Below are positions 23,997 through 26,900 of a DNA stretch of 63,596 nt, piece by piece. The first letter of the stretch is position 1. Every line of letters starts with the position of its first letter. The translations under genes were made by a program, and so were the position numbers. The stretch comes from Stylophora pistillata. Lineage: Eukaryota. The notes beneath the pieces were generated by a model, which saw only the letters and a list, made by a program, of their open reading frames with translations, searched no databases and was not told where the DNA came from. The stretch covers positions 72,226 to 135,821 of the forward strand of contig NW_019218148.1 in the NCBI RefSeq assembly GCF_002571385.2, in the 5' to 3' direction.

Positions 23997-26900
23997 ATGA
24001 GGAACATCGTTAGAATCGCTATCATCCTGTTGCTTTCACAATGTTCTGCGGTCCATTCTAAGAGGAAATACGGACGAAAGACAAGTGACAACAACTCGGT
24101 GCAAACAGTTAAATATCAGGAACATAGAGATGTTTCTCTCCTTTATGGCGCTTCCAAAGATGCAGAGGATTCCGGCCAAACAATTACAGATGATCGTGAA
24201 GGAAGCACCGACTCTTTCAATCGAAATCTCAAGTTAAGGAGGACAGTTAAAAAGCACCATCTAAAAGGTTCACGTGGGTTTCCTAAACGACGTGTTGATG
24301 ATCTGAGTCACCCCTCTGGGATGAGGAAGAATACTGTTGCGACCAATAATAATCAGTTCAAAGAGTTTCAGGATAAAGAAAAAGTGGCATTCAACATAAG
24401 AGGAAGTAAGATGTATGACAAAAAAAATTACGCCCCCCGTAAAAGACATAAATTTCCTCGCAAGACCATACGCCACAAAGAGACATCTACAAAGAAAAGA
24501 ACTGAAGTCGAAGACGACCTTAGCGAGGAGCGACAAACTATCAAAAAGACACTCGACTCATTTGATGACATATCAGGGTCTTACAATAGAGGTGTCAACA
24601 TGGACGGCATGGATATCAAGGAAGTGAGCATGATCGACAACAACACTCTGTCAGACTATTTTCACGCTTTGAATGGAAACGCAAGTGAAGGAAATAACAA
24701 CAACTACATGCAAGAATATGCGTCCTCACCAACACCAGCTTCAACATGGGAAGAGAGTTCACCCTCAGACACAGAAGAAAGTAGTGGTAATGACGACTTC
24801 TATGACGCTATTGATCGAGGAGACGAGCCTCCTCCGCTGAAAATGAAAAAGGTTCGTCCCACAAAGTCTAACTTTGACACGTTAATGCACAAGTCAAGCA
24901 AGCATGTGGGATCCTCACCGACAAATCCAGGAACTGGGCCGTCGTCTAAATTTCGTTTACCCTCTCAAGAGGATTTCGAAAATTTTTTTCGTGGAATGCT
25001 TGATCATTTTGGCCATGGACGAAATCCTGACCAATCTGTACAACAGAGTGAAAGTAAAGTGAATCAACACCAAAGATTGGACAGCCAAAGGAACATTTCA
25101 AATTTTTTAGAAGCTCTAGGTGAGCATCGTCCAGGAAACGTAACCAAAGTGGTATCACTGGGAAGCCCAGAGGAAGTAGAGGTTGAAAGACAATCCCAAC
25201 ACCCTAATATGGTCTTAACGTCTAACACAGGTTCACCTCTGTTTACCAATGAACAGGTTGGGAGAGATGGAGAAGGATTAACGCCCTTCCTTCCACCAGA
25301 AAACTTAATGAAATGGAGGCAAGGGCCATTTGGAGGCACAAGAATCCCTTTGCACGGTCGCGAAAAAGGGCCCGTAATTAAAGTTGGAAATCCCTTAACA
25401 TTTTTACGCATACATCCTCAGGACTCTGAAAAACACGTCGATCACTTTTTCCCCAAGAAGCAGAATGGTGCTCTGCCTTCGAATCCATCCTATAAGGGAA
25501 CTCGGATTATGGGAGGGAAAATATCAGGTGGTCAAATTTCAGGCGGACTAATTAAAGGAGGACAGATAAAAGCCGGGTCGATAGAGGGTGGCATAATTAA
25601 GGGGGGCAAGATTGTTGGTGGAAGAATAGCTAATGGAACTATGGAGGGTGGCGTTATTGCTAAAGGGCAAATGTTAGGAGGGCACTTGGTGAATGGTAGA
25701 CTTGAAGGAGGACAGCTGCTTGGTGGTAATGTATTTGGAGGAAGGATATTGGGTGGAACTGTAGAAGGTGGAGAAATGAAAGGCGGAGTGGTGGCCGGTG
25801 GGCGTTTTCGTGGAGGACGCATGCAGGGTGGGCTGCTTAGAGGAGGTGAAGTACAAAGTGGAATTTTGAGAGGTGGAAAAGTCGAAGGTGGTATCCTTCA
25901 CGGAGGAAACATTGAGGGAGGTGAGTTCAAATTTGGAGATATATCAGGAGGGACCCTGAAGTCTGGGGCGATGCTTGGTGGACAGCTCAAAAATGGAAGT
26001 ATAGAGGGAGGAACTCTTAAAGGAGGGACAATAGAAGGAGGTATATTGAAAGGCGGAGTCATGGAAGGCGGACACCTGAAGGGAGGGCTTGTTCTCGCTG
26101 GTAAAATTAAGGGTGGGGTTATCGAGGGGGGAATAATTGAAGGTGGTGAGATTGGTGATGGGGTTTTAATAAGGAATGGTAAAGTTAACGCCACGATCAT
26201 AAGTACAGGGAGTACCATTGATAAGAATCAGGAGCTTAGTGGTATATTTCAACAAGGAGAAAATCCGCAGCAGTTAGGACTCAAAGTTGACCAACAAAAG
26301 TTTCATCAATCAAATGGTAAGACACCACATGCATCGAAAGCCATGTCAGACTCACCGACCAGTCCTCAAGTGTCTGCCTCAACACCTGAGCACAACCTTG
26401 GGCTGACGGTAGTCAATCCAAGTACGGACGTCAAAATACCTATACGAGAAGGAACTCTTAAAATGCTACCACAAGAAAATGATCAATCAGATGATAGTGG
26501 TCTTGAAAAGTTGTTATCCGAAGGGAAGTCCGAAGGTGATAGTATAGTTACTCCTGAACTTTCGTCACAGCGGTTCTTTGAGGAACAAGATCAGCCCAGT
26601 CGAGCCGTTCAAAAGAAAGGTTCCAAACAACATCATGTTGTTTTTGACGGAGTCGGCTTCGATCTTCCCAATGAAGATTTTGTAGATCTCATTGATAAAA
26701 TGAAGGAAGGGCCAAAAGTGGTAGAGGACCTAGTCAGTTATTATACAAAGCCGAAAAGGAAGGAAAACTTACATATGGGGAGAATATCAGAAGAGAAAAA
26801 CGTGCACATTAAGCCGGAGGAACTCGAAGCTAGACTCAGCAGTCCTACAAAACCGAGATCCAGTGTTACTCGGTCTGACAAAGACAAACACCATGACAGT

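Follow-up and report, generated by a model that had tools for sequence, protein, structure and literature searches.

Do the glycine-rich pentapeptides of a coral gene form a beta-solenoid, and if so, of which kind and in which protein family? The question is raised by a stretch of 63,596 nucleotides of Stylophora pistillata (NCBI RefSeq assembly GCF_002571385.2, contig NW_019218148.1, positions 72,226 to 135,821 of the forward strand), hereafter the window, in which all coordinates are given unless another contig is named. A first reading, made from the sequence only, had proposed that an array of 43 pentapeptides in this window builds a secreted beta-solenoid of an undescribed type. We find that the array, which lies in the gene LOC111338320, is an ancient and most likely folded protein domain, neither a simple nor an elastic repeat. 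The domain is real, transcribed, deeply conserved and without a name. It probably adopts a right-handed triangular beta-helix of about 14.7 coils of 15 residues (about 7 nm). In this form it would act as a rod or as an interaction module of a multidomain protein that is secreted and pan-cnidarian. Two features delimit it:

25512-26156, plus strand: pentapeptide array of 43 in-register units (translation, single register).
25503-26201, plus strand: predicted folded beta-solenoid domain, made of an N-terminal strand, 44 units and a C-terminal cap with longer strands (AlphaFold2 and DSSP).

The translation of 25512-26156 confirms what had been claimed for the array, i.e. 43 Gly-rich units in register without indels. 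It holds 215 residues of the unit xG-x-[ILMVF]-x. Position 2 is Gly in all 43 units. Position 4 is hydrophobic in all of them (18 I, 11 L, 6 M, 6 V, and 2 F), so that its earlier description as aliphatic or Phe needs only a small amendment for the six Met units. Gly occupies position 1 in 34 of the 43 units, position 5 is mostly K or E (11 of each, plus others), and position 3 is a mixture of polar and aliphatic residues. Overall, the array is 36% glycine and has no proline at all. An N-terminal strand, RIM (25503-25511), precedes it, and a 44th unit, DGVLI, ends at 26171. Such regularity is not expected from composition: when these 215 residues were shuffled 100,000 times, the best single register had 16 fitting units, against the 43 observed, and the probability of finding G at the 43 set sites is ~1e-19 given the region's own composition.

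The DNA of the array is not a young satellite, since the 15-nt units have a mean nucleotide identity of 0.50, all four Gly codons are in use, and Tandem Repeats Finder reported only one 46-nt piece in it. Hence, the period is kept at the level of the protein, as the sequence-only reading had argued. The pentapeptide is not the whole repeat either. Position 5 alternates, being acidic in odd units and basic in even units in every clade, and I/V alternate with L/M/F at position 4 across much of the array. Furthermore, internal indels among orthologues measure 10, 30 or 40 residues, the sole exception being a 9-residue gap in the protein P0050. Together, these three observations indicate that, at the sequence level, the true super-repeat is the decapeptide GGx[V/I][E/D]-GGx[L/M/F][K/R], present in 22 copies.

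The array belongs to an expressed gene. It lies in an open frame of 1017 codons on the plus strand (23940-26993), with an ATG at 23997, and the exon borders can be read in the DNA (acceptor AG just before 23991, donor GT just after 26985). The NCBI model P0001 (1500 aa), titled 'uncharacterized protein LOC111338320 isoform X2 [Stylophora pistillata]', contains this exon with 100% identity. Contigs of poly-A RNA-seq from two studies, together with stranded raw reads, cover 23991-26985 without gaps, and the stranded reads place the transcript on the plus strand. Transcript letters 5' of 23991 are unmatched, which is consistent with an upstream exon. Downstream, the RNA contigs show the GT..AG joints 26985>27256 and 27908>28287 and a further skip 27429>27659, and one of them joins the last repeat units to downstream exons. 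The gene is thus transcribed, and splicing links the array exon to those that encode a ConA/LamG-like jelly roll and TSP1 repeats, described below. The first coding exon and the signal peptide are:

23991-26985, plus strand: first coding exon of LOC111338320, which encodes the signal peptide, an N-terminal low-complexity region, the array and a second low-complexity region (RNA contigs).
23997-24059, plus strand: predicted signal peptide of 21 residues (the sole strongly hydrophobic 19-residue window; cleavage site set by eye).

We read the array protein as secreted because this predicted signal peptide is its only strongly hydrophobic segment, which upholds the earlier claim on this point. 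The orthologues likewise begin with a hydrophobic N-terminus.

The sequence-only reading had tied its proposal to conservation in other anthozoans. The domain is indeed found there and beyond, in Scleractinia, Actiniaria, Scyphozoa and Hydrozoa, by word-based and full-library searches in which the clades of homologues were assigned via named NCBI orthologues. Its members include proteins of Nematostella (LOC5513112, UniProt A7S4S0), Acropora, Montipora, Oculina and Desmophyllum, of the scyphozoans Rhopilema and Sanderia, and of Hydra vulgaris (LOC100201718). In many scleractinians the domain usually lies within a single large exon. In Hydra and Rhopilema, the protein is arranged in the same way, with a signal peptide followed by a long low-complexity region, the array, the jelly roll and TSP1. 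Most of the hexacoral sequences examined have 44 units and one clade has 46; medusozoans and one further group have 32-37. Throughout the family, position 2 is Gly and position 4 hydrophobic, with few or no exceptions. Individual units have also kept their identity: of the 4 variable positions, units that are orthologous between Stylophora and Nematostella share 2.18 on average, and non-orthologous ones 1.07. The domain marks a family retained through the whole history of Cnidaria (coral, anemone, jellyfish, and Hydra) that has neither a name nor a Pfam model.

The absence of a named family, another of the earlier claims, is supported by Pfam, which gave no match over the array, whether searched with the exon (E <= 1), the 285-residue domain (E <= 10) or seven orthologues. 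A search of the ESM Atlas with P0001 gave no usable match, and a literature search with gene and protein identifiers from five species found no paper. Orthologues are called 'uncharacterized', 'Hemicentin-1' or 'Glutamine-rich protein 2'. The 'Hemicentin-1' label of some of them is explained by their TSP1 repeats. The name 'Glutamine-rich protein 2' (QRICH2), given to the orthologue of Acropora cervicornis, was judged by name and literature only and treated as an artefact of automatic annotation: no QRICH2-named protein was among the matches of two length-appropriate searches, and no paper was found that ties QRICH2 to such repeats.

Which fold do these repeats adopt? The AlphaFold2 (AF2) model m21bd7202e99a of a 285-residue query has a predicted local distance difference test (pLDDT) score of ~91-96 over residues 30-250 and of about 95 along the array, while the low-complexity flanks are disordered in the model, with pLDDT below 50. 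DSSP assigns EEE-- every 5 residues, i.e. a 3-residue strand per pentapeptide. The proposed beta-solenoid is thus borne out as a high-confidence AF2 prediction. A Foldseek search of the PDB with the solenoid model found nothing at E <= 1e-3. In alignments made with VIA-align, the best structural matches to the model are the passenger helices of self-associating autotransporters of the TibA (4q1q), Ag43 (4kh3/7koh) and AIDA-I type, extracellular rods with a right-handed three-faced beta-helix. TibA aligns over all 216 residues (Z 18.4-18.8, root-mean-square deviation (rmsd) 2.3-2.6 Å) and Ag43 over 222-239 residues (Z 17-18, rmsd 3.0-3.9 Å). Pentapeptide-repeat proteins (PRPs) follow with Z ~12 and rmsd 2.7-3.5 Å over 165-186 residues. 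The left-handed LpxD and GlmU also have Z ~12, with rmsd above 11 Å over 159-186 residues.

Two indirect lines of evidence point to a coil of 15 residues. The first is given by the spans of the structural alignments. Model residues cover more residues of their targets than their own number: 216 of them cover 274 residues of TibA, and 233 cover 299 residues of MpAFP RIV, whose coils have 19 residues (PMC3492233). These ratios, 1.27-1.28, equal 19/15 and give 15 residues per coil in the model. Besides, 224-247 model residues cover a little more than the Ag43 long arm, which has 13 turns (PMC8993888), and about 15 model residues are aligned per PRP coil. A 20-residue coil is disfavoured, since the spans should then be ~1:1 for TibA and for MpAFP, and the PRPs should fit almost perfectly, neither of which is observed.

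The second line uses the sequence only and does not depend on AF2. It comes from charge pairs at the two outward positions, 5 and 3, which we counted as opposite:like by unit lag, pooled over 25 family members. At position 5, the counts are 253:80 at a lag of 1 unit, 305:12 at 3 units, 73:249 at 4 units and 234:57 at 5 units. In the jellyfish sequences, lag 1 is loose (7:7) and lag 3 is clean (13:1). Position 3 lacks the period-2 pattern and gives 68:13 at lag 3, with about 0.5:1 to 1.4:1 at all other lags. Among 8 clade representatives, the lag-3 value was reached in none of 20,000 shuffles at either position, even though the shuffles of position 5 kept the period-2 pattern, and the signal is seen in each deep clade. 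Given the complementarity at lag 3 of both positions, units n and n+3 act as neighbours, as expected for a coil of three pentapeptides and not for one of four. The quadrilateral rod of the Rfr type with ~11 coils, as initially proposed, is therefore not supported: structural matches and charge pairing both lead to three units per coil and ~14.7 coils. The regular K/E surface ladders of the same proposal also have to be revised, since K and E alternate along each ladder instead of forming ladders of their own.

These elements suggest the following architecture. Each pentapeptide would form one side of the helix, with the strand x-h-x, and the Gly-Gly of each unit would make a tight corner, a possible reason for the invariance of Gly. 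The core would be filled by the one hydrophobic residue that each unit turns inward. Three units would build one 15-residue coil, and the stacked coils a triangular rod. On a three-unit coil, the period-2 charge pattern implies that every ladder along the rod reads E-K-E-K, and such ladders may act as salt bridges between coils. The corners of this predicted rod also carry N-x-S/T sequons, read in the translation:

25632-25640, plus strand: sequon N-G-T, at the corner of unit 9.
25992-26000, plus strand: sequon N-G-S, in unit 33.
~26187-26195, plus strand: sequon N-A-T, after the array.

Stylophora, Acropora and Nematostella share the three positions, and in Hydra the equivalent of unit 33 carries NGT. 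This conservation at solenoid corners suggests that putative glycans decorate fixed points of the rod. What we observe directly is the repeat pattern with its conservation, a spliced transcript, the accompanying domains and the charge complementarity at lag 3; we infer the fold, the coil length, the handedness, the salt bridges, the glycosylation and the function.

Several points weigh against this interpretation. The fold is a prediction, and the residues per coil and the handedness were read from alignment spans and lists of matches. The AF2 alignment was limited to 23 related rows, and AF2 tends to give confident solenoids for repetitive sequences. The family sequences share ancestry, which makes the charge-pair counts non-independent. 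Taken on its own, the period-2 pattern would also suit a four-sided coil of two-fold symmetry in which I/V stack on I/V and L/M/F on L/M/F, and such like-on-like stacking is the common habit of natural solenoids. Finally, the PRPs matched in the PDB fall in the expected register, with G2 on i-2 and the hydrophobic residue on i.

The last two points count in favour of the best of the alternatives, in which the array is a divergent member of the Rfr superfamily: a right-handed quadrilateral of ~11 coils with 4 units (20 residues) per coil, in which Gly replaces Ala at i-2 and acidic and basic ladders occupy opposite pairs of faces. Searches of the PDB sequences with phmmer and with the family profile returned PRPs as the only matches (4yfo at 4.6e-13, 2j8k at 1.5e-9, range to 1e-6). 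One short DSSP strand per pentapeptide is also found in Rfr folds, the non-Gly residues at position 1 are spaced by 2 and 4 units (A5-N9-N13, F29-N33), and the alternation of I/V with L/M/F would give like-on-like ladders at lag 4. However, no Pfam family matches at E <= 10, and the Pentapeptide models are silent on the 1017-residue exon (E <= 1), on the 285-residue domain (E <= 10) and on the orthologues. The array has 43-44 contiguous units in register, as PRPs do, but its sequence departs from theirs. The PRP consensus is [S,T,A,V][D,N][L,F][S,T,R][G], or in its extended form (A/C/S/V/T/L/I)(D/N/S/K/E/I/R)(L/F)(S/T/R/E/Q/K/V/D)(G/D/E/N/R/Q/K) (PMC8145042). Gly, found at i-2 in 43 of the 43 units, is outside both sets, and the centre is L/F in only 13 of the 43; the residue at i+2 fits, being Gly in 34 of the 43. 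On the predicted model, PRPs also fit less well (Z ~12 against 18-19 for the three-faced helices), with about 15 instead of 20 residues aligned per coil. Lag 4 would bring like charges together (73:249), whereas lag 3 pairs opposite ones (305:12), and position 3 pairs at lag 3 only. We thus regard membership in the Rfr superfamily as unlikely.

The E-values of the PRP matches add little to this alternative, because unrelated period-5 repeats score up to 1e-100 with the same profile and such values reflect the 5-residue period instead of homology. Two 15-bp minisatellites, translated as (GLVKR)n and (GDIDD)n, reach E ~1e-22 with the family profile, which has 20,303 matches at E <= 1e-3 in a library of 1.84 billion proteins. 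We rejected as relatives the best-scoring matches from outside the family, i.e. phage-tail-like (I/V-x-A-x-x)n proteins and young simple repeats, among them (AGRVE)n, (NGQVW)n and (GGNYD)n; the first three of these four are unrelated in spite of E-values of 1e-50 to 1e-100. This is a warning for the use of HMMER on such sequences, where pairs of unrelated period-5 repeats reach E-values down to 1e-100 and matches to PRPs cannot be read as homology. As for the strong match to a characterized family that would have undermined the original proposal, Pfam and Foldseek (E <= 1e-3) gave none, and the PRP matches in sequence have low E-values that are driven by periodicity. A search for a paralogue of the array in the S. 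pistillata assembly found none: the 59 other profile matches inspected all proved to be 15-bp minisatellites in translation, adjacent to masked N runs.

These searches revealed other period-5 sequences. The (GLVKR)n minisatellite, with its period of 15 bp, is dispersed over dozens of sites in the genome, often follows TGLDWTG, often enters masked N stretches, and looks like part of a repeated element. Its loci L003-L005 and L007-L010 lie in the G000 contigs C105:69250-69780, C205:129581-130027, C76:763539-764021, C1278:38285-38698, C102:73446-73844, C548:187474-187677 and C369:273385-273693. A second period-15 repeat, with an acidic translation, is found at G000:C264:32277-32912 (L006), where an open frame of 266 codons consists almost only of (GDIDD)n/(GDFDD)n. 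In the protein library, P0083, P0086, P0132, P0134, P0150, P0176 and P0188 are Thr/Ala-rich proteins of 1,500-4,300 aa with an (I/V)-x-A-x-x periodicity over hundreds of residues, e.g. KIAANAITAGTIAA. One relative, P0229, has Pfam Pentapeptide_4 and bears the label 'phage minor structural protein'. These proteins form a distinct and abundant period-5 class. Finally, the pair P0084/P0102 comprises an NPC1-like transporter with >100 units of (AGRVE)n and an adhesion-GPCR-like protein with 86 in-register units of (NGQVW)n; both blocks resemble young expansions of coding minisatellites within proteins that are ordinary in other respects.

A second alternative is that the array is an elastic or disordered Gly-rich segment, i.e. 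a beta-spiral or a polyglycine-II-like structure of the silk or elastin type, and that the AF2 solenoid is an artefact of repetitiveness. The glycine content, the long flanks of low complexity and low pLDDT, the general tendency of AF2 to over-predict solenoids on repeats and the lack of a PDB match in Foldseek at E <= 1e-3 would all be compatible with it. Yet the identity of each unit is kept between cnidarian classes, Gly at position 2 and the hydrophobic position 4 hardly vary across the family, most of the hexacoral sequences examined have exactly 44 units, indels come in multiples of 10 residues, and proline is absent. The charge pairing specific to lag 3 has no reason to exist in a disordered chain either. 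This makes a disordered array improbable. Least likely of all, and very improbable in our view, is that units of different molecules stack into cross-beta fibrils resembling functional amyloid, in the matrix or in a cnidarian-specific structure: the alternating E/K and the single hydrophobic residue per unit would permit in-register or complementary intermolecular sheets, and the curli subunit 8c50 is among the weak Foldseek matches, but the solenoid that AF2 gives is monomeric and self-contained, with a defined cap strand at either terminus, and conserved ends with conserved, non-repetitive unit identity are typical of a single-chain fold.

The three-sided, right-handed helix thus remains the preferred account of the array, and the rest of the protein gives it a context. 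From its N-terminus, it would consist of a signal peptide, the solenoid between two disordered regions, a ConA/LamG-like jelly roll, and TSP1 repeats. The last two are encoded by the following exons:

27256-27429, plus strand: ConA/LamG-like jelly roll, exon 1 (RNA contig pieces and joint; fold tested on orthologues).
27659-27908, plus strand: ConA/LamG-like jelly roll, exon 2 (RNA contig pieces; Pfam silent).
28287-28526, plus strand: ConA/LamG-like jelly roll, exon 3 (GT..AG joint 27908>28287).
32773-32925, plus strand: TSP1 exon, absent from isoform X2, i.e. P0001 (Pfam TSP_1, E 9.8e-12).
34655-34813, plus strand: TSP1 repeat (Pfam TSP_1, E 3.5e-11).
35315-35470, plus strand: TSP1 repeat (Pfam TSP_1, E 9.2e-12).
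35907-36065, plus strand: TSP1 repeat, at the C-terminus of the protein (Pfam TSP_1, E 5.6e-12).

The exons of the window were scanned one by one in Pfam, P0001 stood for the joined protein, and the fold of the jelly roll was tested on stretches of orthologues. The fusion to LamG and TSP1 domains, as described at first, stands for TSP1 and, at the level of the fold, for the jelly roll. The four TSP1 exons score 43-46 bits with TSP_1 (PF00090), for a cut-off of 21.6, and P0001 has three matches. For the jelly roll, Pfam is silent: neither the three exons (E <= 10) nor the full-length orthologues match Laminin_G, and a profile search finds only weak matches among PDB sequences (BoNT HCN at 0.07, PTX3 at 0.66). 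The AF2 model of the orthologous segment of Nematostella has a pLDDT of 76 and a pTM of 0.82. Foldseek matches this model to the lectin-like HCN subdomains of clostridial neurotoxins and to the lectin domain of trypanosome sialidases, with E of 1e-10 to 1e-8 and TMq of 0.6-0.72. The three exons between the array and TSP1 hence appear to encode a ConA/LamG-like jelly roll, a relation at the fold level only.

Three other observations concern the surroundings of these exons. Between the jelly-roll and TSP1 exons, 30153-31190 of the plus strand is an open frame of 345 codons, of which the NCBI model takes the first ~15; the rest is of low complexity and may be an intron or an alternative exon. Right after the last TSP1 exon, at 36176-36438, a tandem repeat of ~30 bp in at least 5 copies is open in several frames on both strands (HLHSVDLTCL…) and is probably 3'UTR or intergenic. 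Further on, two open frames of the minus strand (40252-40410 and 41272-41427) resemble exons of a Rab1-type small GTPase, in a gene that would lie tail to tail with the solenoid gene.

What the rod does is a matter of conjecture. Most plausibly, it would be a rigid spacer that offers a flat, charge-patterned surface for binding or self-association, in the extracellular matrix or in a secreted structure. The templating of mineral, one of the functions first suggested, is unlikely as the ancestral role since the non-calcifying Hydra, Nematostella and jellyfish retain the domain. If the three-sided coil holds, it would be a minimal and very regular scaffold, of value for fold classification and protein design; to our knowledge, beta-solenoids built of pentapeptides are known only as the four-sided, mostly bacterial, Rfr fold. 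A more demanding proposition joins all these elements: a 15-residue triangular right-handed helix, a geometry without a solved example, with obligatory Gly-Gly corners and alternating Glu/Lys ladders, which is also the signature domain of an uncharacterized extracellular family restricted to, and universal in, Cnidaria. We hold this joint claim tentatively, with a little less confidence than an even chance would warrant. If true, the array protein could well belong to a structure specific to cnidarians, for which the mesoglea and the cnidocyst are candidates.

How does the array compare with known systems? Its likeness to the rods of TibA and Ag43 is one of shape only. The Pfam searches, which gave no autotransporter or AIDA match, and HMMER against the PDB show no sequence relation between the array and the autotransporters. 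The array protein lacks what defines the AIDA-I/Ag43/TibA group, namely imperfect repeats of 19 residues, a bacterial signal, and a beta-barrel translocator at the C-terminus. Rungs in that group have ~19-20 residues, against ~15 in the array, and have no 5-residue period; the proteins are bacterial and come with their translocator, whereas the array gene is a spliced animal gene. Ag43 acts through helix-to-helix self-association (PMC8993888).

Very short coils and small corner residues are known among left-handed solenoids. The hexapeptide-repeat helices of LpxD and GlmU have 18-residue coils and a triangular section, and the antifreeze protein of the spruce budworm is a triangular beta-helix with 15-residue coils and small residues at its corners. 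These three differ from the predicted helix of the array in being left-handed, and their repeat motifs are unrelated to it. In its domain composition, the protein is closest to thrombospondin-like extracellular proteins, with which it shares a signal peptide and a ConA/LamG-like jelly roll followed by TSP1 repeats. The jelly roll of the array protein differs in being missed by the Laminin_G models of Pfam, and we know of no Gly-Gly pentapeptide solenoid in any thrombospondin, hemicentin or other named family.

A close parallel in repeat design is provided by the PRPs. The Rfr fold is exemplified by PF00805 and its relatives, including Np275/Np276 (2j8k), HetL (3du1), MfpA, Qnr and the luminal domain of SV2. 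Like the array, these proteins keep to a strict period of 5 residues through a long run of contiguous units, with inward-facing residues at i-2 (small) and at i (hydrophobic), a common Gly at i+2, and one pentapeptide per side of a right-handed beta-helix. The array differs by its invariant Gly at i-2, where PRPs use A/C/S/T/V/L/I, by a centre that is mostly I/V/M and not L/F, and by its decapeptide E/K super-period. It also comes from an animal, is extracellular and is joined to ConA-like and TSP1 modules, and it most likely has three units per coil where PRPs have four.

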